Source: Marsupella aquatica | Lineage: Eukaryota > Plantae > Marchantiophyta | Direction: 5' to 3' | Assembly: GCA_973895155.1 (NCBI GenBank) | Contig: OZ316898.1 | Coordinates: forward strand, 21,091,292 to 21,155,291 | Length of the DNA: 64,000 nucleotides | The notes under the pieces: model-generated | What the model was told of the DNA's origin: nothing | Databases searched by the model: none | The model's input: only the letters and a program-made list of their open reading frames with translations | Position numbers and translations under genes: made by a program | Shown here: positions 34,901 through 62,330 of the stretch, one piece after another | Position numbering within the stretch: position 1 is the first letter of the stretch | Layout of the letters: each line of letters opens with the position of its first letter

Positions 34901-36616
34901 TCGGAGCCTCTCTTCGCTCCTTGCACTCCTCCTTCGACAAGCTTGAATGTGGATCTACTTGAATGCCCGTTCTCTCTTTTCAGCTCTTAGCTGCACGGAT
35001 GGAAACTGGCGGAGTGTGCCTATTGGAGCTCATGTTTAGTATACAGCAGTAGCAAGAAAATGATCCAAGCAACAAGAGCGGGGCGGGGCGGGGCAGGGCA
35101 GGGCCGGGCAGGGCAGGCGGCTGTAACCCATGTGGTGGTCTCCATCGGAGGCCAAATCCAGTGCTCTGTGAGAATTTTGACCGGTGCCATTTCCTCATTT
35201 TTTCCAGTTCAGCTGGGTTTTCTGGTGTTTGCATGTGCGACAAAAGGTCTGACCTTGAATCGGGTATTGGCATTGTTTTGTTGATCCTTTTACCTAGCGA
35301 GGGTTGAAAGTGGAGGGTGGATTGGATCATGGTGAGAGGCTTCGGGAGGACCCAGTGGCTGCCCAGATCCTGCTTGGATCATGGTACAACAACAGCAGGT
35401 GCAGAAGACATAGAAGAAGTAGTAGTTTTTGTTGACGAGTTCTGAATTGGATTAGGCTGAATTAATTGCAGTGGTGATGGGCGGAACTGTGGCTCAAGTT
35501 AGTAGTACTCTCATGATTCCCGACAGTACCCTGTGATTTTGTAATCCTGTGAAAGACAAAAATATGTCATTCACCAAGAGGCCATCTTCCAAGGAGACGA
35601 CCTGGACGTGAATTTGTGTTTGGTTCTGACGAATTTGTGATTAAGCGTTGTGGAGAGAGTTTAGGGTTGTAAAATTCTTTGGAATCCATTTTGCCATGTT
35701 TTAATTTAGGGGTTAAGCTGGGCCGAGGCTGATGCTGCAAGGTAGAGCAGCACAGCTGGACATGTTCCATCGCAATCGGTGTCCCATATGCGAGAAACAT
35801 CTGTTGCAGCCTGGCCAGTTGATGTTGATTCTGGCAAAAAGTGGCAGGGAATCGATTGGCAACTACCCCAGTCCAGCCCAACTATCAGTACTCAGCAGCT
35901 TATTGCAGATAGAGAAATGGCTTCAGTATAATAAGCTTAGAAGAACAGGTTGCAGTGTTGCACTCCTGTTCAGCATGGAAAGCATGACGTGAGTCTTTTG
36001 GAGATTCCAAGTAAATGATCAAAAAGGAGCTGGGGCTCTCTTCAGCCGGACTATATATGAAGCAACCTGAAAGAATTGTTGTCTTCAGTTTCGGTTTTTT
36101 TTTTCAATCAGGTTAAATTGAAGCCAAACGTTTTTCAATTCATTGTATTGTACAACACAGGAGCTATCAGATTTGGAACCTTTTAAATAACTTGGTATCA
36201 TTTGCGTGAAGAAGATCAATCCAATTTTGTACAATAATCCAAACAAATTTCTGCGCGCTGTGACGCCGCCGGTATGGCGGTTAATGAGTGATTCAGTCTA
36301 ACTGCGCTCGGCACGCGTGTTAGGAGGGTCTTAGGCCGCTATTATTAGCATAACGACAGTATTTAGGTAATCATTAGGGGTAGGACATCATTAGACAATA
36401 AGGGGGACTTCAGGTTCGGGCTGGCGGCGGGTCGCTATTCGCACACCCGGGTTACGAGCGTGGAAGGGCCCCTCCCTCGGATCCGTATAACGAACTTAAG
36501 GAAGCGGCCACTGACGCATGCTGACTCAGACCGGCGGAGTGGCCGGTACACCACAAGCGTGAGCGGTTCAGCCTATGGGCGTCGAGGAGACGTCGGGGAT
36601 CGACAAGCCCTCAAAG

Positions 36617-36623
36617 TATAAAA
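36617..36623 (+). promoter_or_regulatory. Candidate LTR TATA box
   Basis: TATAAAAGGGG ~360 bp into the LTR, followed by a CT-rich leader and ATG at 36725; repeated at 51381 in the 3' LTR. Confidence 0.65.
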
Positions 36624-38446
36624 GGGGAGCCAACCCTTTGTAGTGCACCAGTCCATCAGTCCGCGCGCTAGCTTTGACCCCAGCTCTCTCGTTCTCTCTA
36701 GGTCGCCACTACTATCTCCTCTGAATGTCGCACACGATCCTCTCCAGCTCGGCCATTCGATTCTGGACGCAGTTCCTATCTACCGGAAGGCACTTGGCCG
36801 ATTCATTGAAACACGCCAACCCGCGCCGATACAAAATCGAACGTGAATACGAGAGAGCCATCCGCCTAGCAGGACGACACCACTACGTCCTTAACTTTGA
36901 CTACCCGTCTCAGAGCGAGCTTTTCCGACCAGCAGAGGTATCTGGGTACTTCTTCAACGGAGACAAATATATCGGGTTCTGGGAAGCATTGCTTTGGCTT
37001 CCGGACGAGGTCTTCAACATCCTGGGTACAATCGACCTGTAGCGACATCACTTCGACCACATCCCTGCCCGGGTTTGGGCTGTCATTAACGGCGAGTCCA
37101 GTACCAACCGTTCGACAAGGGCGTCCGCACTTGCTTCGGAGAACTTCTACCAGCACCTATAGAGCTTCATGGGAACTCGGCCATCAACCAACATGACCAA
37201 CTCAGCCGTGCCCGTACCCGTACCCGTGCCCATGCAACCCCAGCCTCAACCTCAGGCTCAGCTTCAGCTTCAGCCTCAGCCGCAGCCTAGCCAAACCCCA
37301 CCACCTATCACCCAGCCAGCACAGGTACGCTCCGTCATCAACGCTGTGGATCTTAGCGATGACGACGAGGCTACCCCACCCTTGACCAGGCGGCCCAGAG
37401 GAACAAGCGCTCGGGGGGCCGACACTATATCGTCCCCACCCCCTGCTCTGACCCCAGGAGCGGCCCCAGCAGACAACATGGTGACCGTGGCCGCCCCGGG
37501 CCCGTTACCAACGGCAGTGGCACTCCCCAGGCCCGATCGGGAGGATGGGGAAGTATCACCTTCCCCGAGTCAGTCACGGGGAAAGAAGAGGAAGGAATCC
37601 GCCACTGCATCCGGGTTACCGTTGGCCACGGTAGCCGTAGCCAAGGTGACGATGCACCGCATGGGGGAAAACGTTCACAGCAACATCCTCCATCCCAAGC
37701 ATGCGGTGTACCTGAAGACTCAGGGATTTGAGCACCTCACCTCTCTCCCCTGGAACACTTGCAGGTACTACTGGGAGGACATGACAGAATTCATCAAGAA
37801 TTATGACGACGTACGTCAACAGACTCGGCTGCGGGGAAGGAATATGTCCCTCACAGAAGAACGGCTCAAGATGATCTTCGGGTTACCCGAAGGTGACCAT
37901 CGAGTCGAATCACGGGCTCCCGGGGGCAAGGGGGCCAAGTACCAATCTTCAAGTTTTCCCTCAGAGGGAGCAGTAGACAACGGGTTCGTGATGAGGACCT
38001 GCCTCATGCCCGAGATAGCTGAGCGGCTGGAGTTCCAAAGGTACGCTCTCCACATGATGGAACCCCGGGGGGAGATCTCCGTCGCCCAGGTTATCCAGGT
38101 CGAGAACTATCGACCTAGGAAATGGGCGTCGTACTTTGCTAAGAAATTCCATGAAGAGATGGAGCGGCAAAGGAAGACGCTGTACATTGGTGGGAAGGCG
38201 TATTTCGCTAGCCACATCGAAATTATTCTTGAGTGGTACGCCCGGTTTGATCGACGAACCCTTCCCCGCATCAACGTTACAAAGTTGGTCCCAGCTAGGT
38301 GGGTTTTTCCGGCATTGGAGAGACGGCCCCAACCCGAGGCCCGAAGTCCAGTGGACACGCCAGCTTCACCCACCCCACCTCCACAAATAGCTGTAATCGT
38401 AACCGAGGAGGCGCCGGAGGGGTCGGTCGGCGCAACCGTTGATGCG

Positions 38447-41400
38447 TGTGATGCCTAGACAGGAATCACTCGGCCGGTTAAGTGGGTAAAGCAGGAAGGC
38501 ACCCTAGGAACACCTTAGTATAGGGACAAAACAAGGAAAATATAAACAATTAGGGGCAACCATGGAACCCGGGCCGAGGCCGGAGGTAAGGCTGAGGGTG
38601 AAAACCCGATTAGGGTTAGGGCGCGTTAAGCGTCGGCGGCTAGGAAGGATCAACGGGAAGAAGGACCGGCAGAGGAGAGGGGTAAGGAGCGCTTGCAGGA
38701 GATGGTGGCTCATTTGCGAGCACGAACTAGGCAGACGACTACGGGAGGCCAACTACTGTCAGCTGCTTAGGCAAGCACTCGGGGAGAGAGTAGATACCGA
38801 CGATCGACCTAAGGAGGGTACGAGCAACGTCAATCAAGCGGCACATTTCTGGGGATGCCTGTTCGAACGGGCAACTGAGTACATCAAGACTTACGAGGAC
38901 GAGGAATCAGAAAGGGCAGCTCGAGAACGGCAGGAGCTCGCTCGATTGTGGGAGCTGCAGAAGACGGCTTTCTTAGGAGGCGAACTCATCAAGGACGAGT
39001 TCCTGTGGACGCCTACTTCCAATCAACTCGACGATCTTCTGTTTTGCAAAGACAGTGTCGTCGGCATCCGAGAGGCCATCAAGAACTGCAACGACATACA
39101 CTGGGAATTAAAGGGTAGCACGGAAAGGTGGACCCAGGCAACGGTGCTAGGAGAAACCTCCACGGCAGCAGAGATGAAGAGGAAGGGAGCCGTCAACGAT
39201 GAAGCCACCCCGGCAAAAAGAACGAGGTCGGCGGCACCAAAGAAGCCAGCCGAGCAGCAGAGCAGGAGGCAGGGAGAAGCCGAAGAGGAGGAGGTCGATC
39301 CCATCAAGGCCATTCCAACCAGGGATGACACCTGGAAGGGCTGGGCGGCAACCCTACCGGTGGAGGTGCAACTACATTTTGCACGGGAGGAGGATGCATG
39401 CTTTACGGCCATGCAGACCAAGAAGTACCAAGGCTTCATGGCCGGATCCGGCTTAGAGGCCTTTGTAAGATTACCATGGCTGAAGCCGGAGGTACCGGAG
39501 TCAGACCTATTAGAATTCGTGGGGTCATGGGAACCCGAGACCAATTGCACGAGGATATATGGGAAGGATTTCTATCTTACTCCCAAGGTAATTGCCGAAG
39601 TGTTTGGCTTGCCGATAGGCAATAAGACCAAAGTTGATACCAAGAAGACCTTGCCTGACAAGGAGTTCCGGTCGTTCCCCGGGCCATCAACGAAGAATGG
39701 CTTCTTCCGGAACACCTGCACCAACCCGCACATAGGAGAGATGATCGACTTCTTGCGGGTGACCATGCATTGTAACTTGCCGAGGGCAGAGATCGGCAAG
39801 GCACAGGTCTATCTGGTAGAAAGGCCAGACCCAAGCCGGGACTACAACGGGTACCTCCTCAACCAATTGAAGAAGATCTTAAAGGAGGAGCAGCAGGTAA
39901 TCGGCATGGGGAGCGTGTCGCGGCTTGGCTATCACATGCCGCTGTTGTGCCGGTATGCCAGAGGTCAGACTTTTGCCCCGGTACTTCCCCTGCAGGTAAG
40001 GGCACCCGAGGAAGCTCCAACGCCGAGGCCGTTGGCTGAGAAGCCTCAACCACCTGTTAGTCCTACGATCGAGCAGGTGTTTAGGCCCAGGAAGGAGGAC
40101 TTGCCGATGCAGCAACCAGGCATGCAGAGTCTGCTGAAACTACTGGAGAAAGAAAAGAAATCGGCATCGGCAACAACAACGGCAACGGCAACAATGCAGG
40201 ACACTACTACAGAGGTAGGCCTACACCGGCTCACAAGAGAAAACCCCTTTGCTGGAGACAAGGAGAGAATCAGGCCGGAATCCAAGCCAGGTGTTCGAAT
40301 GTACGTGGGAACCTCAAGCTCCGAATCTGAGGCAGAATTGCCTGAAGCTCCTACCGACGAAGAGGAGAGGGAGAAGCCGGACGTCCAAGAGGTAGAGGAG
40401 GCAGTGGAGGACTGCAGCCATGATAATTCCGGCTATGGGTCGGACCATCACGTTCCAGGAGTAAGGACCTGTGGCCGGTTTGTCCCCACACTTCCAAGGG
40501 TAGTGCGAGGGGACCCCAACCAGCAGAGTAGCCCTGAGTCTCCCCCACCAGATGTTGCTCCCCCGAGCTTCGACGGCATAAAACAGACGGTGCAGGAATT
40601 TCAGGAGCGAATCAAGCAGGAGGAGGAGGCCGCCCAGGCTAAGGAAAAGGATTTACCAGGAGGAGATTGGCCGGAGGACATCAGGCGGCTAGCCAAAAAA
40701 GGAAGCAAACCTCTAGCCACGATTGAAGAGATCCGCAGGACGGCTTGGGAGCAGAGGCCGCGATGGGCGATGCCGATCACTTCTACTTACTCCACCTACG
40801 CTAAGAATAGAGCCATGGAGTATGGTGAGATGTGTGGGGAACTTGCGCTCGGCATCTTTGGAGAGGAGTTGGAGGTAGGACCCTTTTTCCATAGGGAGCA
40901 GTTGGAGAAGCACCAATTAGAAGAAGCGATGGCTTTAGAGAGAAGCAAGAAGGACGAGGTCATTCGGCGGCTTAGGAGGATGGAAGCCGAGATTGAAGAT
41001 CTAAGGGCGGCCAAGAAAGCCCAAGATGAACTGCGGATTAAACGACATGAGCTGAACATCATGCAGGGGCAGTTGGACACCGCGCAGGCTGATAATCAGA
41101 ATATCAAGGATAAACTGACTCAGACGCAGGGAGAGTTGGCCGACACGATCAAAGAGAGGGAGAAGTGGAAGCAAGAGCTGAAGAATACAGAGGAGGCCCA
41201 CATAACAGCCAACAACCGGGCCATGGCGGAGACCCAAAGAAAGGAATGGGCGTTGAAAGGGGAGCTCGAGAAAATCCGCGGAGCCCTTGAGCAGAAGGAG
41301 GCCGAGTTAGGGAAATCCTATCAAGGGATTATGGCGCTGCAGCAAGAGCTTGCGTCCCTGACGGCCAGCTTCAAGGCCGACCTAAGGGAGAGGGACGAGA

Positions 41401-43105
41401 TGCTCGAACAGACTTACGCCAAGATGAACCAGATGGAGTCTGTCATCATTGCAGAGCTCGACAAGGAGCTAAAAGCAACCCAGGAGGAGAGGACTACCTT
41501 GAAACAAGAACACGAGGAAGCCCAGAAGGAACTAGAGGAGGCACGCAAGGACCTGGATGAGACCCAGGAGGAGTTGGAGGAAATCACGAGGAAGATGGAG
41601 AACCTCCAGCGGCAGGCCGACAACCAAACGGAGCGGCTGAAGAAACAAGCCGCAGTATTTAGGTGCTTGTCTTCATCAGGCCCAACTCCAATTGGGGCAA
41701 CCAAGTTACCAGGAGTGGTACTGGCCGAAGAAAAAGCTGCGCCAACTGCACCAGTGCCGGAGGTAAGTGGGAAGGGGAAGGGACCAGCCGCCGAACCAGA
41801 AAAGAAGAAAAAGCGGAAACCTTCAGGGTCAAGGAGTAATCCGACTCCACAAGCCGTGGTGACCAAAGAGGTAGAACCAGCACCATCCTCCGACATGAAT
41901 ACGGCAATAGATCCCGCTATGATCACAGGTGGGGGTGGTGCGGCCCAAGCCGAACTACTCAGTAAGGAGGCCGGTATTCCAGATCCGCCTCTTGAGCAGG
42001 CCGGGGAGACCGTAGCCGAGGCTGAGGCCGTAACCGATTCTCGAGCCGATGCCGACGCCGATGGTGGACCCAGTCAGGCCGATGGAGAGTTGACTCAGTC
42101 AAGGGCAGGTAATCTGTCAGGGAATGAGCCTACGGCAGTGGCTGAGGAGGAAGCGTTGGGGGCGTCCATTAAGGATCCACCACCGGTGTCGTGACGGTGC
42201 AAGGGCGCCGTTCCTTTTAGGGAGGGCGGACGTGGAGGGAGGAGGCGTGAGTGGGCAGGGCTGGCGCGGATCTCCACGTTTAGGATTAGGATCAGAACCA
42301 GGAGCGGCCCTGACACTTAGCTTAGTGGGATTGCGGTCCCACTGGTAGGAGCAACACTTGTGCTCCTGCCTTGCTGTACATAGGTAGATTCGGGCAAGTA
42401 GATTACTGTTAAGTAGATTAGGCTTACGATGCAAAGAATGGCGGATCCACTACCAGGATAAGTACCTGGGCAGCGGGGAGCTCAGGGCCTCTTCTTTAGC
42501 AAGTTTTTAGTTTGCACCAGCCGGGCTGGGATCAAGTAGTACGAGAAGCTCTTGGTTAGTCATACAGTGACCCTTGTGTATATTCATGTTTCCTCATGCC
42601 TAAGAGCTGAATAGAGTTGGCCTCACGGCTTAGTTCGCAGAACTTGTGTATGAGATGTACTGTTTGTATGGCAAGTGCATGGTATGACTCAGTCAGAATG
42701 AGTCATTTTGCTATTTGTGTGTCGCATTAACTTGTGTGAAGAGTGCCCACATCAACAGAAGGAAGGAAAGTAAGCAGGGGAGTGAGAGTTGGATGTGTCG
42801 AGCTGAGAGAGGTCTTAGCGGCTTAACCAAGCCTATTGGGGATCATTCCGGCGGCGGAATCCAAACATACCTAACAAGACGGAGGGGAAGACAGGGGAAG
42901 GCCTATATTAGGCCGGCTACGTATCTCATGACCCGATGAAGGATCTGTCCAGTATATGTGTGTAAAAGGTTAATAGTAGTAGTAGAAGGTTAGCAGCGTC
43001 CCATGCCGCTAAGCCGCGGAAACGGCCTCGCCAAGCACGAAACCTGCGGGAATCGGCTTGAGCTGGGGGGTTTCTTGGGTTTAGGGAGCCATGGGACGCA
43101 CCACA
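38447..43105 (+). mobile_element. Family-A solo-LTR-like unit (copy 1), 4659 bp, nested in the family-B 5' LTR gene
   Basis: TGTGATGCC...GCACCACA termini (imperfect 8-bp inverted ends); TSD ATGCG at 38442-38446 and 43106-43110; no gag/pol inside. Confidence 0.96.
38562..42194 (+). CDS. Family-A accessory protein, 1210 codons: domain X, PMD-like domain, acidic/Pro linker, ~250-aa coiled coil, Lys-rich NLS-like patch
   Basis: Uninterrupted ORF filling ~78% of the unit. LLEFVGSWEPET...LTPKVIAEVFGLPIG resembles the plant mobile domain motif (ERWRPET...LLGLPIDG); KKKKRK near the C-terminus. True start may be near 38820 (ATG in copy 2, ACG here). Confidence 0.88.
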   Translation: MEPGPRPEVRLRVKTRLGLGRVKRRRLGRINGKKDRQRRGVRSACRRWWLICEHELGRRLREANYCQLLRQALGERVDTDDRPKEGTSNVNQAAHFWGCLFERATEYIKTYEDEESERAARERQELARLWELQKTAFLGGELIKDEFLWTPTSNQLDDLLFCKDSVVGIREAIKNCNDIHWELKGSTERWTQATVLGETSTAAEMKRKGAVNDEATPAKRTRSAAPKKPAEQQSRRQGEAEEEEVDPIKAIPTRDDTWKGWAATLPVEVQLHFAREEDACFTAMQTKKYQGFMAGSGLEAFVRLPWLKPEVPESDLLEFVGSWEPETNCTRIYGKDFYLTPKVIAEVFGLPIGNKTKVDTKKTLPDKEFRSFPGPSTKNGFFRNTCTNPHIGEMIDFLRVTMHCNLPRAEIGKAQVYLVERPDPSRDYNGYLLNQLKKILKEEQQVIGMGSVSRLGYHMPLLCRYARGQTFAPVLPLQVRAPEEAPTPRPLAEKPQPPVSPTIEQVFRPRKEDLPMQQPGMQSLLKLLEKEKKSASATTTATATMQDTTTEVGLHRLTRENPFAGDKERIRPESKPGVRMYVGTSSSESEAELPEAPTDEEEREKPDVQEVEEAVEDCSHDNSGYGSDHHVPGVRTCGRFVPTLPRVVRGDPNQQSSPESPPPDVAPPSFDGIKQTVQEFQERIKQEEEAAQAKEKDLPGGDWPEDIRRLAKKGSKPLATIEEIRRTAWEQRPRWAMPITSTYSTYAKNRAMEYGEMCGELALGIFGEELEVGPFFHREQLEKHQLEEAMALERSKKDEVIRRLRRMEAEIEDLRAAKKAQDELRIKRHELNIMQGQLDTAQADNQNIKDKLTQTQGELADTIKEREKWKQELKNTEEAHITANNRAMAETQRKEWALKGELEKIRGALEQKEAELGKSYQGIMALQQELASLTASFKADLRERDEMLEQTYAKMNQMESVIIAELDKELKATQEERTTLKQEHEEAQKELEEARKDLDETQEELEEITRKMENLQRQADNQTERLKKQAAVFRCLSSSGPTPIGATKLPGVVLAEEKAAPTAPVPEVSGKGKGPAAEPEKKKKRKPSGSRSNPTPQAVVTKEVEPAPSSDMNTAIDPAMITGGGGAAQAELLSKEAGIPDPPLEQAGETVAEAEAVTDSRADADADGGPSQADGELTQSRAGNLSGNEPTAVAEEEALGASIKDPPPVS

Positions 43106-44950
43106 ATGCGACCCAACTAGCCGGGCTAAGTACAGAAGTTGGTACGGCAGAGGTCTTACCCGAACCCGGGTCTCCCAAGGACCCACTGGTGGCAATTGCA
43201 GAGAACCGGACATTGCTGCAGGAGGACACTCCAGCCCCTTCCAATGTTATGTCCCCAGGGCTAGACGTCACTGCCCCGGCCCCTGCGCGTGTTGACGTCT
43301 GCCCGTGCCCAAATCCGGACAGGCACAACTTGGACCTCCCGAAACTCTTCGTACAGGGTACGTTTCTGAACGGGCTTCTGGGAGATTTCTCTCATCAAAT
43401 TTCCCGGGATACCAGGGAGTTCATGGCCCGGAAGGTAGCCTGTTTCTTCAATCAGGAGTTGGTTGCCCCAGTAAAGGCAGGTCGGGCCCAGTCGGAGGCC
43501 CTTCAGAGGATAGAGCGGTACCGGGTGGAGTCCGTGTACCTAAAGAATGAAGTGGCGGCTCAAGAGGCTGAGCTTCTGCAACTACAACCCAAGGTTGCAG
43601 CCGCCGATGAGTTGTTAGCAAAGGCGCACGCTCTTACCGCCCTAGCCGAACAGGCCAAAGCTGGGAACGAGGCCGAGATTACACGACTCCGGAACCAGAT
43701 TGACAGTTTGAAGAAACAAGCTATCACCTGGCAGAAAGACCTGGAGGAGGCCGAGGAGCGAGCCCAGCGGGACACGGCGGAGATAGCCACGCTGCAGGCC
43801 GAGATAGCGCGGCTCCAAACCAAGGCCGAGAAGCAGGATCAGCTGGCGGCTAAACTGACGAGCGACGCCCAACAGCTGGAGGAGGCATGTCAGGAGGCAG
43901 CAGAGGAGACAGACGCGGCGAGGCGAGAGAACGAATCTCTGCTGGACCAGGTCCAGCTCCTCAAAGCGGACAATGACAGGCTTCGAAGGCAGTGGGATGG
44001 CCGTTCCCATTCGAGCGGCTCTGGCAAGCGTGCCAGGCATTAGCGGTGGAGTAGGAATAGATTAGGATTAGGATTGGCTTAGTCAGGCTCTTGGGATAGG
44101 CACCTGCCTTAGGTACAGCAGCGCTGCCCTACTGTCCAGCCTGCGTAGATTAGGATCTTCTAATAAGACAGCCATTTTCCGGCCAGACTGTCAGCTTAGT
44201 TAGAACCTTAGTCAGCGAATCTTCGGCGAGCGGACACCCCGTCCCTCGGCCCTTAGTATTTAGTGCACCCCTCGGTAGAGGCAGAGGGGGTTTTTAGTTT
44301 CAGAGTCGGACATCCGCGGGATATGCGGGGAGTCCCGACCTCTGGGAATGAAAGAGTACCAAGGGGAGGGGGTAGGACTAAGCTCGTCGGGCGAGTGCGG
44401 AGCCGGGCTCCATTGTAGTGTGCACCCTTGGCCTTGAACCTGTTCATTCCAGGGCTGTCGGGTCAACTAAGTGTACGCATATGTTCCCTTTGTAGTAAAA
44501 TCCTTTCCCATCATTTTCCTTCGTGTAAATCGAGATTGTATGCATGTGTGCGCATATGTGTGTGGGTTTCTCGTATATGGGTGGCAGCGCCAGGCCGAAC
44601 GCACTACCCGAGACGTGCACAGGGTGCAGCCTGCGGGTAAGTGGTTGCGAGCACGGGTTGGGGACCTGTATCATCGAATCCGAATCAAAGGCGGACAGCA
44701 CGAAGGCTTAGAAGCCCTTAAGCCGGGGTCGATCCTGCTATCGACTAAGGTACGTTCCGGCGGCGGAACACAAACCATACCTAGGAGGTGTCCGTATTTA
44801 GCAGTAGGCGCACTTAGCGCTAGTTTACGAGAATAAGGTGCATTACGTGCTTCCCTTCCTGCCCGAACCCTCAGATTTACGAGGGATGTGCCCGTCTACG
44901 CTGAAGTCTGAGTTAAGGCCGAAGCCTGTGACGTGACATAGCCTTTGTTT

Positions 44951-51000: not shown

Positions 51001-51055
51001 TTCACAATTAAGCAAGGAGCTATGTGACGCCGCCGGTACGGCGGTTAATGAGTGA
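48020..51055 (+). CDS. pol: Pol: reverse transcriptase, RNase H, integrase (in frame with gag-PR across one TGA)
   Basis: RICQDYRKLN, MPFGLCNAP, IFIDDF (RT); VYVDVS, NYSPTDREALGI (RH); H-x6-H...CDLC, WGIDYIGP, VSDGGTHF, NGMAERAN (INT); LLYDSR...FPGKLHTRWLGPF (Athila-like GPY/F). Confidence 0.97.
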   Translation, partial: VSWDPSIPQLEEVNPIPRPIPVPPMYGGVRLAQLDASLDPSMQNQVEVIRKEHYRKYTIGMDKSFNLGHPLTGKAEKSIQALLKEYEDVFAWSHHDLTGVSPELGEHMINLNLGAHAVRQRQRRMNPRYSILVKEEIDRLLAADIIYPVMASDWVSPIVIVPKKGGTDGKPKIRICQDYRKLNDATRKDHYPLPFTDMALDMVARNEIYTFLDGYSGYNQIWIRLADQLKTTFTTEWGTFAFRRMPFGLCNAPAMFQRLMMNIFHDFLREFLEIFIDDFAIFGTVAMHPEHLRRTLQRCRDVNLKLHPAKCFFGVEEGVLLGHRVSKRGIEVDQEKVAAWMAVVFPLDQKAVRSFLGCVGYYRRFIKDFAKIALPLTEMMKKDAVVEETPRRRIAFEELRKRLTTAPIMVTPDWNKEFHVYVDVSGFCIGSVLSQLDEDGRDHPIYFASRQLFAAEKNYSPTDREALGIIYSCKKFRHYLLGYKVIFHTDHDSLKYMVNKADVTGRIARWVLLLQKFNYEVRVRPGRVHLNADFFSRLDGVPVDQPIDDIFPDEELFHVGEGTPTWYGSIITFLLTGRIPDGINQEAAAVFLRKVRPYVMIQGHLHKEGINGKLRRCLEYKETLIVIRALHEEEAGGHFAAVTTARKILDSGYWWPTLHRDVQRFIKGCDLCQRAGAPRRAHHHPLTSVLPLAPFEKWGIDYIGPFTPVTRRQRCRYILLAIDYSTKWVEARATVKDDAATSARFLYEQIFTRFGPPLELVSDGGTHFLNDTIAQLTERYLVKHRKTTPYHPKANGMAERANGIIGKILNKTVAAHKTDWDDKLYAAVYSYNLAYKTTTSHSPYFLVFGQHSLVPVEFEVHTPRVSIRDRLPESESLSDRAYQIEALEEARLLAAQHTVKKQATSKKQHDKGLRRVDVVAGDLVLLYDSRYMQFPGKLHTRWLGPFLVNQIYRNGSLELATYAGDLLPTRISYDRVKKYHHQDDDANSDVREGASQLSKELCDAAGTAVNE

Positions 51056-53185
51056 TTCAGTCTAACTGCGCTCGGCACGCGCGTTAAGTGGGTCTTAGGC
51101 CGCTATTATTAGCATAACGACAGTATTTAGGTAATCATTAGGGGTAGGACATCATTAGGCAATAAGGGGGACTTCAGGTTTGGGCTGGCGGCGGGTCGCT
51201 ATTCGCACACCCGGGTTACGAGCATGGAAGGGCCCCTCCCTCGGGTCCGTATAACGAACTTAAGGAAGCGGCCACTGACGCACGCTGACTCAGACTGGCG
51301 GAGTGGCCGGTACACCACAAGCGTGAGCGGTTCAGCCTATGGGCGTCGAGGAGACGTCGGGGATCGACAAGCCCTCAAAGTATAAAAGGGGAGCCAACCC
51401 TTTGTAGTGCACCAGTCCATCAGTCCGCGCGCCAGCTTTGACCCCAGCTCTCTCGTTCTCTCTAGGTCGCCACTACTATCTCCTCTGAATGTCGCACACG
51501 ATCCTCTCCAGCTCGGCCATTCGATTCTGGACGCAGTTCCTATCTACCGGAAGGCACTTGGCCGATTCATTGAAACACGCCAACCCGCGCCGATACAAAA
51601 TCGAATGCGAATACGAGAGAGCCATCCGCCTAGCAGGACGACACCACTACGTCCTTAACTTTGAGTTCATGGCCCGGAAGGTAGCCTGTTTCTTCAATCA
51701 GGAGTTGGTTGCCGCAGTAAAGGCAGGTCGGGCCCAGTCGGAGGCCCTTCAGAGGATAGAGCGGTACCGGGTGGAGTCCGTGTACCTAAAGAACGAAGTG
51801 GCGGCTCAAGAGGCTGAGCTTCTGCAACTATGACCCAAGGTTGCAGCCGCCGATGAGTTGTTAGCAAAGGCGCACGCTCTTACCGCCCTAGCCGAACAGG
51901 CCAAAGCTGGGAACGAGGCCGAGATTACACGACTCCGGAACCAGATTGACAGTTTGAAGAAACAAGCTGTCACCTGGCAGAAAGACCTGGAGGAGGCCGA
52001 GGAGCGAGTCCAGCGGGACACGGCGGAGATAGCCACGCTGCAGGCCGAGATAGCGCGACTCCAAACCGAGGCCGAGAAGCAGGATCAGCTGGCGGCTAAA
52101 CTGACGAGCGACGCCCAGCAGCTGGAGGAGGCATGTCAGGAGGCAGTAGAGGAGACGGACGCGGCGAGGCGAGAGAACGAATCTCTGTTGGACCAGGTCC
52201 AGCTCCTCAAAGCGGACAATGACAGGCTTCGAAGGCAGCGGGATGGCCGTTCCCATTCGGGCGGCTCTGGCAAGCGTGCCAGGCATTAGCGGCGGAGTAG
52301 GAATAGATTAGGATTAGGATTGGCTTAGTCAGGCTCTTGGGACAGGCACCTGCCTTAGGTACAGCAGCGCTGCCCTACTATCCAGCCTGCGTAGATTAAG
52401 ATCTTCTAATAAGACACAGCCATTTTCCGGCCTGACTGTCAGCTTAGTTAGAACCTTAGTCAACAAATCTTTGGCGAGAGGACACCCCGTCCCTCGGCTC
52501 TTAGTATTTAGTGCACCCCTCGGTAGAGGCAGGGGGGTTTTTAGTTTCAGAGTCGGACATCCGTGGGATATGCGGGGAGTCCCGACCTCTGGGAATGAAA
52601 GAGTACCAAGGGGAGGGGGTAGGACTAAGCTCGTCGGGCGAGTGCGGAGCCGGGCTCCATTGTAGTGTGCACCCTCGGCCTTGAACCTGTTCATTCCAGG
52701 GCTGTCGGGTCAACTAAGTGTACGCATATGTTCCCTTTGTAGTAAAATCCTTTCCCATCATTTTCCTTCGTGTAAATCAAGATTGTATGCATGTGTGCGC
52801 ATATGTGTGTGGGTTTCTCGTATATGGGTGGCAGCGCCAGGCCGAACGCACTACCCGAGACGTGCACAGGGTGCAGCCTGCGGGTAAGTGGTTGCGAGCA
52901 CGGGTTGGGGACCTGTATCATCGAATCCGAATCGAAGGCGGACAGCACGAAGGCTTAGAAGCCCTTAAGCCGGGGTCGATCCTCCTATCGACTAAGGTAC
53001 GTTCCGGCGGCGGAACACAAACCATACCTAGGAGGTGTCCGTATTTAGCAGTAGGCGCACTTAGCGCTAGTTTACGAGAATAAGGTGCATTACGTGCTTC
53101 CCTTCCTGCCCGAACCCTCAGATTTACGAGGGATGTGCCCGTCTACGCTGAAGTCTGAGTTAAGGCCGAAGCCTACGACGTGACA
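51023..53185 (+). repeat. 3' LTR of family B, 2163 bp, with ~1854-bp internal deletion
   Basis: Junction AACTTTGA|GTTCATGG near 51664 joins 5'-LTR positions 36900 and 43419 across a GA microhomology. Confidence 0.95.
51489..52289 (+). pseudogene. Deleted copy of the LTR accessory gene (half of domain X fused in frame to the coiled coil, internal TGA)
   Basis: MSHTILSS...YVLNF|EFMARKVAC...; TGA at 51831-51833 where the 5' LTR has CAA. Confidence 0.9.
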
Positions 53186-54419
53186 CGCGCATTATCATTA
53201 TCGTCATGATTCGCAGCCCATTTCCATTGGAACCTACATTGAGATTCGAGGGAAAATTCGTGTGCATTGCTTGTGGCTTATGGGTGTTGCTCAGGGATCC
53301 AAGGAGTGATACCAGGTCAAGTAGACACCCCAGGGTTGAGTATGGAGAGATCGGAGTGCTGTTGGAATCCAAGAGAGAGAGATTTGAGGATTGAGATGAG
53401 TGCCCAGGATTTAGGGTCAAGAATTAGAGAGTTACTAGAGACCGGGAAGGAGCTACTGGGGGTAACAATTGAAGGTAGGAGGAGGTACCTATGGAGGCCA
53501 CAAGCGAATTCAGTTTGAGGAGTGGTACTTGGAGGTTTGTGGGAACTTACCTAGATAGTAAATAGGAGAATTAGAGTAGATGAGCACAAGTCTTCTTCTA
53601 TAGGTATTTCTTCATTGGGCATTACACTAGTAAGATTCTTCTAGAGGTATGTCTCAGTGTAGGGCATTTCTCAGTCGCCTCAACTACACAATGTTTGATC
53701 CAGCTTTGAAACTCATAGTAATATCTACAGGATCGACTGTTTCCAGCAAAGGAATAGAAGACCGGATTGGGGTTGGACTCAACCTCTTAATGTACCGGTT
53801 CGTTGAGGGTTGAGGGTTTAGGGTTTATGAGCACAGTGCACTTATGTTCCATCCGCACCTCAGTGCCGTGTGGTTACGGAGGTTTAGGATTTAGGGTGAG
53901 CTCGGACATGGACGACTCGAGCCCCCGGGGGACCCGACGACTTCATATGGGACCAATTTCCCATCCCGCCCAGTGATGGCTACACCCACCACTACCGTCC
54001 TCGACCTACAAGAGATGGCCGTACCCACATTGATGGGACCATCAATGGCCCAGCCTGCTGAGGTGGAGTTTGTAACCTCCGAGCCTGTGACGGCATCATG
54101 GGGGAAGAGCCGGAAGCAGAAGGCAGTAGCATTTCCTAGCCATCGTCCGATGGCGTCGAGTTTGGCGGCTGTCCGTCTATCATCCCGGTTTATTGCCAGG
54201 CTGAAGGAAATTATGGGATCCGGACCGCTGAGAGGAATCTGTTCGAGTCCGACAGCAAGTCATCCGACGATCGAACGCAAGATTATGGGTTTAAAGTTTA
54301 GGGTTTATTTAGGGTAGGTTTAGGATAGGCAAACTTTAGACGTTGGAGTAGGTGTCTCCAAGACGCCAGTCATGAGGCTTAGCACTGTACTTGGTTCAAT
54401 CGTCTCATAAGAAGCACAT

Positions 54420-55106
54420 GTTGTCGTTTTCATGTTCTGTCCGGTTCGCTCTACACGACTGTCGTGTGAGTGGCTGGCTTTGGACGTGTATCCACCGGGG
54501 TTCTTCCTGGCACATTTTTTACTTTCCGGACGGACCCGATGTGATTCACACAGCGTACACTGAATGAAAGCAGTGAGCGATCATTTCATTCCATCTCTTT
54601 GTAACGGCACACAATCACAGGTTATGGGCCGGTTGAATGCTTATCCTTGGGTTTATGGCATGCACAATGGGCTCGGGAGTTTCGTCTTGGGAGTTTAGGT
54701 GTTTAGGGTTTAGTATTTGACGAAACAATTAGCCCAAATGATGACATAAATCATGAACAGCCTTCATCACATCACCACCAATGCAATGTACCCCAAAGAA
54801 ACTAAGCTTTGTCATCCGGACTATCACATTGGTATCCGATTTTTAGAACACATGGATCCAAATGTATATCTTCCCGTAATGTTAGAAGGCACCATGTTGG
54901 AAAGTGTGACGCACAACTGTGGCTTTATTGTGACAGGAAATTCAACTAGTAGGTTGTTGTTTTGTCCTGTTATTGATGTTCTGTCCTTCAGTCAGGGACA
55001 TCCGGTTTGCTCTACAATACTGTTGTGTGAGTGGCTGCACTTCGGGATGGTGGTTTTTACTTTCCGGAACGGAACAGAACAGAACAGAACTGATGTGATT
55101 CATACA
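54420..55106. repeat. Diverged ~140-bp direct repeat pair
   Basis: ATGTTCTGTCC...GCTCTACA...TGTGAGTGGCTG...TTTTTACTTTCCGGA...GATGTGATTCA at ~54430-54550 and ~54975-55105. Confidence 0.7.
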
Positions 55107-56332
55107 CCCCGAAACCGGAATGCCCGATCTTTGTGGTGGTTTTGCCACCAGTGACCGAAAAAGACTGTCCCACCATGAAAATACAAACGAACCACATTAA
55201 AAAGTAAATCGATCTCCGCCATTCCTGAAATGTGACGGCATCACGAGCCTGGATAGCACTGGGGCCTTCTTCCTTAACCCCCCTCACATCAACTCCGCCC
55301 ACTCTGCCTTCAACCTCGCCGTTGCACGACTATCACGTAGAGCTGCAGCAGCATCTGTTAAGCAAGGATATGTGTTGTTGGGGAGGTATTTTGATCAGCT
55401 AGGGGCTCTACCCGACAGTCGTGCAGAATTTTTGTTGTGTAGGCAGCATGATTATGTAGTACAATATCATCATCGGAATTGAGCTACTGGCCTGTGGTAG
55501 GTCAATGAATCGGGACATCAAACGAAATTGGCCAGGCTTTGGTTAGGGCGGATGAGAGCATGTATTCAGGGTTTTGGGGTGAGCGAATGAAGCACGGGTG
55601 CGTTTGGCCTTGTACCTTCTGTCGTCATCCGCAAGTACCTCTCTGGATGCAGATTATGACCATGGGTTGACGTTCGAGGAAAAGAGTTGAAGGATGTCGG
55701 ATTTTGCAGTTCAGATGCGACGTCGATAGGATGGGGGGTGGTGTCAAGCTTTTTAGGCCGATAAACTGGCTCATCCCATACAGGCCCAGCATTATTGTTC
55801 AAAATGGATGAATTAACTTGACATTGTCAAACTGAATATTGTGAAACCAAATACCGAATGGGTTTAGGGTTTGGGGTCTGGAAGGAGACAAGAAGGCTTG
55901 CTTGAATTAAACAAAAAACAAAAAGAAATGTATATATAGGTAGATTGCAATTCAATCTTTATATTGCATAACTAAGCCGATAGATAGGCGAACTCCTGGT
56001 AAGGGAAGATAGTGCCATGCCACCTACCTAGAAACCCACACTTGCCTGCTCGAGTGATCTCTCCTGACCAGACTGAGTTGGTGCACACGACCGGCCAAAG
56101 CCCAATCCAATCCTAACAAACATCCTATATTGTGATGCTGCAAAGGTTGTTTTATGGAGCATTCCAGACACGAAGCTGTGTGCTCTACCTCACCGCCTCG
56201 GAGATATATAGAGGCAAACGACGCATCACTCGTGCAATCGGAGCTCACTTCTTGTGTGTAATTGACGGCAACAAAGCAGCTCTGAAATCATGTACAAGCC
56301 ATATATCCCCTGTCCAGTATGGCCATAGCCAG

Positions 56333-58544
56333 TCAATCGTCGCGAGATGACTTCTCCAAATTCCGCCACTTGTCTTTGAGATCGACCTGTGCCACAAGCC
56401 ACAAGAGTAAATCGATGGGTCGTATTTGCATTCCGTGGATTGAAACGTGGTATTGCGAATTAATATGACCAAAGCTTACCTCTGTTCGACCTTTCAAAAT
56501 ATCCAAGCTTGCTTTACGGATGATATTCCACTTGCCTTTCCCAAACCTGTTGTTAGAAATTCAATGAGAATGAATGTTCCTTGACAAACACATGATTAGC
56601 CCATAGTAGGTAATACATCTTGGCCGCAAGAATACACGAATAGTCTGTAACTCACTGTGTGATGAAAAGCACAAACAGGATAATCAATATGAGTGGAATG
56701 CGGAGCATCGGTGCAGGATGTCTCCATACTCACCTGTTTACTCCACTTCTGAGGCACTATTCCTCTTCCTCGGTCCACCTTCTATTTTGTCTGCGTTCAT
56801 GTTTCGTCGTGTTGCAGTTCGATTTGCCGGCTGGGTCAACGAATTGGGCTGGCTGCATTGTGGCTGTTTCAGGGTCGGCGAGTCGGACGGACTTGTGTTT
56901 TCGGGTGTCCTGTGTGGAAGCTGGAGGTGGACTGCTCGGGGCGGATGCATTGAAAATCCGTTTTCTCTGCAAATTTAGGGCGGACATGATGCGCATATCA
57001 GGTTTCATGTCTTCTTTGCCTGCGCTGTTGTGCGAGGTGGTGGGAGGAGTTCTGGCCTGCACGTCACAATTGAAACAATTCGGTTCTAGTACAGAATGGA
57101 ACACTTGTCTCCCGTCACCACACACCTATGCCGACCAGCATATTTCATCATTCTGGCTAGGGCGATTGTGAATTGAAGAATGAAAAATAGAGTGTACGAC
57201 AAGGGAAACATTTAGGGTCCTTTCACTGGTGATTTTGTAGTAGTTTAAGTACGTAGGAGTGAATTGACCGTTTTGTATAGTACGTACTAACGCGTACTCG
57301 ATGGTCCGGACAGATGAACAGGAAATAATGATATGGCTAGTAAGATCCTATTGTTACTTTACCTCTAGAAGAAGTTTGACTTCATGGAGTTGGCTCTCAA
57401 GGAGATCAAACTTGTGGTTGAAACTCGTTGCCATCCTGTTATTCTCGTCCGCCCGTAGCAGGTTCTCTTTTTCCAAGGCTCCTACGAGGAGTGAGCATGG
57501 ACAACATGTGTCCGCTCCGGGTAAAGCAACAGCAGGTGTGGCAATCCGGGGGAGGATCGCATTGTTCACATCATCTTCCACTCCACCACCGTCGCTGCCA
57601 GTGTCTGGCGGTGTTTGACTCCGGATTCCGTGCGGGGTCACCACCAAAAAACCAATCGAGTACTGTGGAGACTGGCACCGTTCACCTGCATCCCCACCTT
57701 GCACAGCACCCAGCTCCCCGTCCAGACCCGCATCATTCACAGTGGCCGCCTCTTCCGCTATGTCTTGCTCCAACTCCTTCACAGCCGGATCTATCGGGGG
57801 GTTTAGGGTGATCTGTACCCTTTCATCGTCGCATGAAGCATCTCGAGCCGGGGATGACGAAGACATGACGCAAGGGGTGTGCCCACTTAGCATGACTTGA
57901 AGATGCGGCGAGAAATGGCAAGTGTAGGATGACATCTTACCGTCCACGAATTGCTTATGAGCTAAGCCGAGTGATTCACGGAGCTTGCCGCCAAAAGTTT
58001 CGCCCCAATCATGTCTGGCCGACTGTTCCACCTGCTTTATGTGGCAAGAATACGCCTCGCCCTTTGCTGGCCGAATATGAATAGCTGCGAATTGGAATGC
58101 CAACCTTTCTCGGACGACAGCGTGCTTGCAATCTGTCAACTTGTAAGAACCATTTGTGGCCCTTCTAGCCTTGAACGTCGTGGGAGTGTAATTAGTCACT
58201 TTAGCGTCTAACGGCGGCCCCCCCCCCTCCAGTCGGAAAGTCTTCCGAATATTTTCCATGCTCAAATCGATTGGGTGACCTCTGACAGAGGTCTTTGATT
58301 TTTCGTGGTCATAGTTCTGTATGAACTGTATCATATCCGAGTCCGGATAACTTTTCGTATCCCAGCAAACCTCCACCACAAAGTTGGCAAGTCCGGTCTG
58401 CTGGAGATATTCCGCGTGTTGCGGCTCGCGGATCTTGTGCACCCGATCCTGTAAGGCCCAATTGAAGGATGGCCCCCTCCCCCCCACCTTCGATTTTCGA
58501 GACATCTCATGCTGTTTTCCGAAGGTCACCTTCTCGAGAACCAT
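56333..58544 (-). pseudogene. Spliced gene: PMD-like domain + short coiled coil + C-terminal telobox Myb domain (member E); one premature TAG
   Basis: Exons 58544-57363, ~57125-56734, 56546-56480, 56386-56333 with GT-AG introns. The last three give RRWTEEEE*CLRSGVNR|FGKGKWNIIRKASLDILKGRTE|VDLKDKWRNLEKSSRDD*; VDLKDKWRN is the telobox signature. Acceptor of exon 2 is uncertain. Confidence 0.8.
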
Positions 58545-58576
58545 ATCCTGCCTATATATCAAGTGACCAGAGTGTC

Positions 58577-58627
58577 AAGGAACACTAAGAGTACTAAGGA
58601 ACACTATGAGTACTAAGGAACACTAAG
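58577..58627. repeat. 19-bp tandem repeat (~2.7 units) upstream of gene E
   Basis: AAGGAACACTA(A/T)GAGTACT repeated. Confidence 0.85.
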
Positions 58628-59174
58628 ACGATCAGCTAGCAAGGCAGGGATCACGGAAAGACTTGCTGACAATCCTCGCTTCGGTTGTGATTGGGTTCGG
58701 TCCTCCCTGCCTGAGAAAATGGAGGGATTGCAAAAGTCACGCACGGGGGCTCGATCGGTTTGTTTGAAGGATGAGAATCCTCAGTCTTTTGATTTTGCAG
58801 GACAGGCAGACTCGGACTGGCGCATGGAGTCGGGATAATTTTTGGGCGGCTTGGATGCGAGTTTATGGTTTAGGGCGGGAAACGGCAGTTCATAATTCAC
58901 AAAATTGTACTCTCGAAATATATTCCCCGTAGTTCTGTCGAACTTGGGGAGTATTATTGTGTAGGAGTGGGGCTGGAGGAGTGCGGTCATTTGACGACTC
59001 GCGCTACAAGTGACTAGAAAGTGAATACATCCTCAGTGGTGGCGGCGGCCGCCGAGAAGGTTTTTCTATTTACCACGATTGACAATATCAATGCATCATC
59101 ATGAATCCTCCCTGGGTAAGATTCTCGTCATTCAAAATTTAGTGGATCTGTGACAAACCTAACAGCAATAATTC

Positions 59175-60664
59175 GAGGTATATGCTTAATCGACCCCCTC
59201 TGGACTGTTTCTTATTTAATCAACCCCCTATGTTCAGATCTGCCCCAATCGACCCCCTCTGGACTGTTTCTTATTTAATCAACCCCCTATGTTCAGATCT
59301 GCCCCAATCGACCCCCTCTGATAATTTCTTACATATAATTCTTGGGAAGAGTAGTATAGGGAGAGTTTATCACGGTAAACTCTAATTTTCTATTATATGA
59401 GCCCGTGGTCTCGTCCGTGGTATGCTGCAATTATGTCGAGATAAGAGTGGGCCCACAATCCACGCATGATAAGATCGAATGATACCGGACGCAGTCGTGG
59501 ATACTTGTGTTTGAAGACAAAACTAGTATGGTCTTCAAACATTTAGGGGTCTCCATTTGTCTGAGGTTTAGAGGTAATAAAACTGGGCTGCTATCTCCAT
59601 AATGTTCCTATATAGTTGATTTGTTGAGAATCTTTATGAGTGCATTCCACTAGAGACAAATCTATGTTTGGATCTCACTCACAGAAAATGCCCTGCTGGA
59701 TCTGTTTGACACCGATTAATTTGCTAAATCGGCACACTTGCATTCAGAAATTATTTCAAAATGTTTCCAATCTTTATGCCGCAAGACCATTATGACAGCC
59801 AAGAATCCAAAACACCTGTAAAATTCTCCAAAATCCTCGAAGTGTTTAGGGTTTAGTGTTTGAATTTGAGTTGCCTGTTGCTTCCATTACGAGCAATTGA
59901 ACTAAGACACTCTGCATTATGTACTCTCAACAAAGTGTATTGTATTCACTAGAATAAACATATCAACAACAATTGATGACAACATCAAATTCTTACAAAC
60001 TTTCTTATAGGCTTTCCCATCAGTTAATATCCTAAACCCACGTGCAATTGAGTCTTGCTTTTGGGCACGCTCTATCTTGTAGTGATAAAATGTCACATTA
60101 AAAAATGTCCACTTCAAATAGATCCCCTCTATGCCAGAGATGCACAATGACATCAAAATCTCCAACATTGATAGTTCTAAGTGTACCTCACACGACTACA
60201 ATGTCATCTAGATTGCATGCAAACTCTAACAAAAAAGAGACTGAGCTTCCCAATAACCCTCAATGCAATAGATTCCCCCAAACCTCATGACCAACAGAAG
60301 TCATCATGACAGAATTTGAAACAATGAACATTTGGACCAAGTTATATGAGGCTAATTCAATAATGCAACACCTGAAGACATAACATGTATTGTCTTCACA
60401 TCATTTCTGAAATCCTTGATCGTCACCGTCAAGGCACGACCGACCCTAAATGAAGCATTTGATGGTTTGGCCAAGTCGCTTGCACCCACGGACAGGTTCA
60501 GGTAGACTGCAATTGCAATACACGGCATGTCATGAACCATAAACATATCAAAGGGGGTCGATTGGGGCAGGTTCGAACATAGGGGGTCGATTGGGGCAGA
60601 TTTGAACATAGGGGGTTGATTAAGCAGGAAACAGTCCAAAGGGGTTTGATTGAGCATATACCTC
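59175..60664. mobile_element. Non-autonomous Mutator-like (MULE) element, 1490 bp
   Basis: Long TIRs GAGGTATATGCT...AGCATATACCTC with internal subrepeats (CTGCCCCAATCGACCCCCT); 9-bp TSD CAATAATTC at 59166-59174 and 60665-60673. Confidence 0.92.
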
Positions 60665-62330
60665 CAATAATTCTAGTCCTGTAGAGAGAAAATTACGGGA
60701 TTATTGTGTTGTACATTCATCTATTCATATATTTCAGAGTGGGTCTTGAAAGGTTCACAGTAAGTTGTTGTTCTCCCCGACGGTAGGTGTACAATCACCG
60801 AATCACGCATCTACTATTCCACTGGTTATGGTGGGTCCGTGGGTGCCGACTAGCGCAGTACGTCGTTAATGAACCCTATGCAGTACAGGCGCCAGCCCAT
60901 TGAATCGCGAGGGATCCCAGAGTTGGGGCCGGAGGAGAATATTTGTAAGTGGAGTGATTATTGACCGTTGGCTGAACTCCTGTAGAACTTTAAGTTCAGT
61001 TTTGTGGTGGGGGCCGAAAAAGGACTCTAAACTTCTTCTTTTTGCCTGCGTATACTACTTGAAAAATACAAGGTACCGTCTACAAACACTCGTTAGTTCT
61101 TGTTAGGCATAGAACTACACAGTATACTATCATCAATGGCTCCCTCTATCTTTATTCTCTCCAACTTACTTTCAATGTGTTTGTTTTTTCCTTCTTTCTT
61201 CTTTCTCTTTTGTTCTTTTCTTTTTTTCCCATGGGTGAAATGGGTCACCTGTGACACTGTTTCCAAGGGGCTTGACTCTTTTTAAGGGACCTTTTTTGTG
61301 TGGGAGCGTTCCATGTCTTTGATTTATCGGTTTTTTTAATTTAATTCTTTTTTTATTTCTTTTTCCTTTGGGTGAAATGGGTCACCTGGAAGAGGGACGA
61401 CTCTTTTGAAGGGGCTAAAAAAGAGGGAGGAATACAAAAGTAGTGGAAGAATAATTGTTAATAAATTAAACCAGTATGTAGGTCTAGTTTAGGGTAACAT
61501 TATTGAGGGTAACATTATTGAGCTTTAAATTGCCAATCACTTTTTTGTCAATTTGGACTCTTCCAAAAAGGAAAGTTGGAACGGACCCCATTAGAGGTCC
61601 CTTCCAAAATTCCTGGCACCAGAGTGTGCCACGTCAACAACAATTACAACAAACAAGACTTGTCCGTTTTGTGAATCAAATTTGCAGTTTTCATTCATGT
61701 TTGCATCAACTTGGCTGTGAATTTTGGGGTTTGGGGTTTAGGGTTTAGAAATTTTAGAGTAAAAAAGGGATGTAAAAATTATAAATGCAAAGAGCAAGAC
61801 GGGTAAAACTGTCACTATGTAACCATTTTAGTTACATATCCAATTTTAAAAATTAAATCATGTAATAAACAATGAGTAATAACTAACTTGATAACTTCCT
61901 TGTTAAAGGGTAATTAGCACATGGAGTAAGATTTTCAACCTTTTGCAATTTAGGCAAACTATGGTCGGAACTTGAACTCGGTGAATTGATACAATTCATT
62001 TGATCAGACAAAGAAACTGGTTTCAAATGTATTTGCCGAGGATTGACTATTAACTCTCTTAGCTTGAGAATTTGGTTGGTTGCATGTAGCAAAAAAGACT
62101 GATTTTGACATCTGCTTGTGATAACCATGTTGTCGACTTTGGCCTGGAAAGCAAAGCATTCCTGTGACAGTTGAAAAAATGTCAAACTGCTCAGGGCATG
62201 GCTGAATGGGTCCACAATGATTTCTTGAGAAAATCTAATCTAAACAATGCAAGCTGTGAAAATCTATCAATCATATTTGTCGAACACAACATGACTACCA
62301 GCATCCCTTCCTAATCTTCCTAATCAGACT

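Follow-up and report, generated by a model that had tools for sequence, protein, structure and literature searches.

VANC and plant-mobile-domain (PMD) proteins locate DNA and reverse silencing. In Arabidopsis, the promoters at which they act also carry teloboxes to which TRB-Polycomb recruiters bind. A minus-strand locus of the liverwort Marsupella aquatica raises a question within a single reading frame: does one gene encode both a transposon-type domain and a telobox-type Myb domain, and does it belong to the host or to a mobile element? We analyzed the locus within the window, a contiguous stretch of 64,000 nucleotides.

A four-exon gene model on the minus strand

A preliminary description had proposed that a Myb domain interrupted by a TAG is completed here by small exons flanking 187- and 93-nt GT-AG introns. 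Direct reading of the strand, with the junctions checked by script, confirms the coordinates and the anatomy, so the exon-intron arrangement is real as an observation in the sequence; the TAG was found at 56759-56757. The spliced model has four exons, all introns are GT-AG, and the summed exon length of 1626 nt corresponds to 542 codons in a single frame. The features of the gene, and the second copy of its N-terminal domain in the window, are as follows.

57363-58544, minus strand: exon 1, 394 codons, ATG at 58544, phase 0, with a GTAAAG donor at its end
57870-58487, minus strand: predicted VANC21-like DNA-binding fold, residues about 20-225, common to transposon accessory ORFs
57363-57512, minus strand: closing part of exon 1, with a Cys-rich motif and then a putative helical, zipper-like stretch rich in leucine, read from the alignment
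57057-57362, minus strand: intron 1, 306 nt, GT..AG, phase 0
56734-57056, minus strand: exon 2, 323 nt, continuing the frame of exon 1; basic Ser/Pro-rich linker and Myb helix 1
56757-56759, minus strand: in-frame TAG, codon 494, in Myb helix 1
56547-56733, minus strand: intron 2, 187 nt, GT..AG, phase 2
56480-56546, minus strand: exon 3, Myb helix 2 (FGKGKW...)
56387-56479, minus strand: intron 3, 93 nt, GT..AG, phase 0
56333-56386, minus strand: exon 4, Myb helix 3 with VDLKDKWRN, seven more residues and TGA
37169-38458, plus strand: transposon-associated paralogue ORF of the N-terminal domain, 429 codons

For the Myb exons, neither a separate start codon nor a separate upstream exon is present apart from the linker exon that continues the frame of exon 1. 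The donor of intron 1 lies at the same place in relatives, right behind the helical stretch, and the Cys-rich and zipper-like layout at the end of exon 1 recurs in P0001, P0002, P0003, P0007, and P0009. In most family members, the motif has two to four cysteines in a span of about ten residues and abuts the helical stretch; it might serve in metal binding or as a redox site.

Two candidate DNA-reading modules

Pfam matched no domain, H1/H5 included, in exon 1 or in the exon-2 ORF, and returned coiled-coil noise only for 19 aligned family members. The families PF10536 (PMD) and PF09331 (DUF1985) match 0 of these 19 members at E values of up to 1. A word-indexed protein search with exon 1 gave no match; when the family alignment served as the query, P0012 alone was returned. 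Likewise, a profile search against PDB sequences yielded coiled-coil chains only, which were taken as noise. Language-model features provide a weak pointer to DUF1985 and PMD clusters (0.90), with PMD present in 20% of one cluster. A phmmer scan of 1.84 billion protein representatives detected 18 relatives, the best at 46% identity (E 7e-41), all of which cover exon 1 residues about 22-250. Within the window, a tblastn comparison aligned exon 1 residues 31-222 with the plus-strand ORF at 37169-38458 (27% identity over 201 columns, E 6e-21), and both sequences can be aligned together with 17 other members.

An AlphaFold2 model of residues 20-235 (216 residues), built with an 18-row alignment, reached a pLDDT of 91.9 and a pTM of 0.86. 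Foldseek returned one credible match to the PDB, 9lnj_A (probability 0.98, TM 0.56), a crystal structure of VANC21 in complex with its target DNA; all other rows had probabilities of 0.02 or less. VIA-align, which is independent of Foldseek, placed 9lnk_A first (Z 8.1, rmsd 4.0, 201 of 216 residues aligned), with the next chain at Z 3.8. On these model comparisons, the N-terminal domain is predicted to have the fold of the VANC21 DNA-binding domain. The combined searches support grouping it with transposon accessory proteins rather than with host TRFL proteins. The domain had been called PMD-like in the preliminary description. Its placement among transposon accessory domains stands; the PMD label fails at the sequence level, and the likeness at the level of fold goes to VANC21.

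VANC21 is the anti-silencing DUF1985 protein of the Arabidopsis VANDAL21 transposons; it recognizes a motif of nine bases, and DNA methylation is lost in a sequence-specific manner through its action (PMC5735166). As the sole clear structural match, to a DNA-bound structure and over 201 residues, VANC21/VANC6 is the closest comparison for the N-terminal domain, and relatives of the domain in this genome are transposon accessory ORFs, as is VANC. There are also differences: the domain lacks a PF09331 match, identity in the structural alignment is about 10%, and DUF287 is absent. The carriers here are LTR-type units, whereas those of VANC are Mutator-like VANDAL elements; in addition, a C-terminal Myb has been added and the lineage is bryophyte.

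A second comparison is with MAIN, MAIL1, and MAIL2 (PMD-C, PF10536), transposon-derived domains that have become chromatin regulators through domestication. According to a preprint (10.1101/2024.09.27.615353), MAIL1 has a PMD-C domain similar to the DUF1985 domain of VANC, and PMD-C proteins counteract Polycomb silencing at promoters in which teloboxes are also present. The window domain shares with the MAIN/MAIL proteins this reported nearness of the PMD-C fold to VANC DUF1985 and a weak language-model likeness, but not a Pfam PMD match. While these proteins contain no Myb domain and use motifs of their own (M1M, M2M) to reach DNA, a telobox-type reader would be present here in the same chain.

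The C-terminal module is read directly across exons 2-4 as RRWTEEEE-stop-CLRSGVNR, FGKGKWNIIRKASLDILKGRTE, and VDLKDKWRNLEKSSRDD. It contains three spaced tryptophans (in RRWTEEEE, GKGKWNII, and KDKWRN). Pfam did not match the pieces when they were searched exon by exon, as they are too short; in relative L007, the Myb product, which was called independently, has a PF00249 (Myb_DNA-binding) match. The motif VDLKDKWRT in helix 3 is a published mark of telomere-repeat-binding Myb domains and makes telomere-specific contacts (PMC3767043). The window sequence VDLKDKWRN matches this consensus in 8 of 9 residues, in agreement with its earlier assignment to the telomere-repeat-binding type. By analogy, we infer that the window Myb would bind TTTAGGG-type repeats. 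This specificity may not extend across the family, since the recognition helices of relatives differ; that of L002, for example, reads DCKDRWRNL.

The window Myb resembles those of the TRB/SMH and TRFL proteins in being a single Myb/SANT domain, in the spacing of its tryptophans, and in helix 3. The TRB/SMH proteins, however, have an N-terminal Myb together with an H1/H5 domain, whereas the window Myb is C-terminal and H1/H5 is absent. The C-terminal Myb of TRFL proteins has an extension, in place of which only seven residues follow WRNL here. This extension is needed for binding in vitro and defines TRFL family I. The remainder of the window protein is unrelated to either group.

Relatives and genomic setting

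Regions downstream of the relatives were read for Myb exons, leaving out P0001, P0007, and P0008, the contigs of which are short downstream, and P0004. Four diverged loci, drawn from other assemblies and a Sphagnum-associated metagenome, keep the domain and the Myb together.

L002 (relative P0002), 35% identity: co-oriented Myb exons; both Myb introns at the window positions
L003/L004 (P0003), 36% identity: co-oriented Myb exons; first Myb intron and second donor match the window, and the contig ends there
L005 (P0006), 31% identity: co-oriented Myb exons; first Myb intron matches the window
L007 (P0013), 43% identity over a partial match: co-oriented Myb exons; first Myb intron matches the window; 46.8-Mb NCBI contig

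At these 31-43% identities, every Myb intron reached by a contig lies at the window position. The first conserved site is behind helix 1 and the second is behind 'RT.', ahead of helix 3. The position of intron 2 is conserved in L002, L003, L005, and L007. For intron 3, the GT donor is at the same position in L002 and L003, and the acceptor and last Myb exon are visible in L002. Direct reading of L003, the contig of which ends at the middle Myb exon, gives an unbroken frame with GT-AG junctions from the domain exon up to that point. In L003, the neighbouring gene, about 1 kb away, encodes a DEAD-box helicase. The family probably reaches mosses, because L003/L004 derive from Sphagnum-microbiome metagenomes (PMC9584203). 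In L007, two copies of the 3' segment with the Myb stand in tandem at a spacing of about 2.5 kb (8155 and 10651), and the middle exon of the second copy looks decayed.

The long, intron-less, coiled-coil relatives P0005 and P0009 have no Myb within about 1 kb downstream, on contigs that are too short to show a transposon setting. In the domain tree, a split sets the transposon-type rows apart from the Myb-linked ones, which all lie together on its other side; with weak support at this key split (63/73), the tree does not establish a single origin of the fusion. A search of full-text literature found no description of the pairing, in line with the earlier remark that no described protein is known to have it.

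The setting of the gene bears on whether it is still transposon cargo, namely the accessory gene of a large unrecognized element in which the Myb would aid escape from silencing or the choice of telomere-like insertion sites. The preliminary description had assigned the N-terminal part to the family of an LTR protein. The homology is borne out by the alignment described above (27%, E 6e-21); the LTR location is not. A Gypsy element has a 5' LTR (36259-44938) that carries a 6.5-kb insert at 36901-43416, and a 3' LTR (51023-53185) without the insert. Because the insert is confined to the 5' LTR copy, its 429- and 1210-codon ORFs are nested insertions and not native LTR content. The insert contains the 429-codon ORF and a 4.66-kb unit with the 1210-codon ORF.

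Relatives of the N-terminal domain in the window therefore occupy LTR-associated units; the surroundings of the gene are repeat-rich, with a MITE-like element adjoining, and the window copy has a nonsense change, all of which would suit cargo. Against this, the gene itself has no flanking terminal repeats: the only match found around it is of 32 nt at 72%, which was taken as chance. The depth of DNA contigs over 56170-59117 is at the lower level of each run, and it rises several-fold from 59118, at the start of the MITE-like repeat. The MITE-like unit (59167-60672) is several-fold deeper than the adjoining gene in all four DNA runs. Since depth over the gene is at each run's lower level, the locus looks like a low-copy gene and not like mobile cargo. 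The intron positions kept among diverged relatives, the helicase gene beside L003, and the lack of a nearby downstream Myb in the long, transposon-type P0005 and P0009 also speak against cargo. We consider this explanation possible but unlikely.

Two local features were also recorded. The MITE-like unit has 95-nt terminal inverted repeats that are 88% complementary, and a perfect 59-nt tandem duplication at 59188-59305. The segment at 55902-56169, just 3' of the gene, is free of contigs in runs X1 and X4 and covered in X2 and X3, which may be a presence/absence difference between samples.

The repeats to which the Myb would bind are common in the window. TTTAGGG occurs 48 times, compared to 9.7 +/- 3.3 in shuffles, a five-fold enrichment that agrees with their reported abundance. 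Thirteen consecutive heptamers in the region 53410-59851 are all on the plus strand, and hence read CCCTAAA on the sense strand of the gene; four heptamers (56974, 57211, 57802, 58869) are in or just upstream of the gene. There is also a short interstitial telomere-repeat array at 2290-2352, with six minus-strand TTTAGGG units in 63 nt.

The premature stop and the reading of the locus

The four runs that cover the locus are DNA; their contigs traverse the introns with no joint inside the gene. At 56759 on the plus strand, the window and X1 have A, and the sole covering contig of X3 has G. The gene strand accordingly reads TAG in the window and X1 versus CAG in X3 and in part of X2. The X3 contig, from organism B, is 98.8% identical over 56380-56866, introns included, and could derive from a very recent paralogue instead of an orthologue. 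In X2, which is likely to be from the same organism as the window, G-bearing contigs account for 353 of 1148 depth units at 56759. The TAG is strain-specific or polymorphic, and corresponds to a C-to-T change at a CHG site.

As judged from the sequence, the TAG-bearing copy is a predicted null allele. At most, it would yield a protein that lacks the Myb. With the TAG 90 nt of mRNA ahead of the last exon junction, the transcript is probably subject to NMD. No indels in coding exons are among the listed DNA-contig differences. Apart from TAG>CAG, the coding differences comprise at least 9 synonymous and at least 13 non-synonymous changes, in a list that may mix paralogues. Constraint on the coding exons is only mild at best.

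These results also bear on whether a fusion protein is made at all, or whether the locus is two separate genes or a decayed remnant, with a transposon-derived ORF positioned by chance upstream of what is left of a Myb. No RNA run covers the locus, the automatic gene call for L007 splits the region into three products, and the window copy has its stop, each of which would fit such a locus. The exons themselves argue otherwise. The frame is preserved over all three window introns with canonical sites, and the Myb exons have only the linker exon to supply an upstream part, with no separate start. At the four diverged loci, the same arrangement and orientation are found again, as are the positions of the Myb introns. 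This conservation supports the view that the two parts behave as one gene. In this respect the preliminary description, which had treated the domain ORF and the Myb exons as a unit, was upheld: they are in frame in the window, and adjacent and co-oriented in four diverged relatives. We regard two separate genes or a decayed locus as improbable.

An ordinary host TRF-like/TRB telomere protein with a misread N-terminus, an identity to which the TRFL-like C-terminal single Myb with its telobox signature might point, is largely refuted and highly improbable given the absence of H1/H5 or any other Pfam match, the mere seven residues after WRNL in place of a Myb extension, and an N-terminal domain that matches transposon ORFs and VANC21 rather than a host TRFL protein.

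We therefore favor, with a probability of roughly 0.6, the reading that the window contains an allele of a nuclear gene that is present in low copy number and belongs to an old bryophyte family. In this gene, an N-terminal module of predicted VANC21 fold would be joined by a putative dimerizing helix to a C-terminal telobox Myb. The Myb would anchor the protein at TTTAGGG-type repeats, such as teloboxes and interstitial telomere repeats. The VANC-like module would read a second motif, alter local silencing, or both, by analogy with VANC and PMD-C proteins. The TAG in Myb helix 1, which would make the allele null, would have arisen in the sequenced strain from a CAG by a C-to-T change at this CHG site.

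A bolder version is that the family as a whole is ancient in bryophytes and combines a VANC-type anti-silencing binder with a telobox reader, counteracting DNA methylation or Polycomb marks at telomere-like repeats and telobox promoters. We put this forward as speculative and rather doubtful. If true, the protein would be a one-chain version of the antagonism between TRB and PMD proteins in Arabidopsis, and the segregating null allele would signal either ongoing host-transposon conflict or dispensability.

This analysis newly assigns a predicted VANC21 fold to this copy, finds its intron positions to be conserved, and identifies the stop as polymorphic or strain-specific. If the family is unexpressed, it is merely a decaying by-product of transposons. 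The TAG/CAG difference among samples provides natural loss-of-function material. Through a naturally occurring protein that couples a VANC-like fold with a telobox Myb, the link between silencing and teloboxes could be approached directly. Such a protein would also show that, well ahead of the rise of flowering plants, this transposon-derived fold had been taken up by hosts or retained by transposons.
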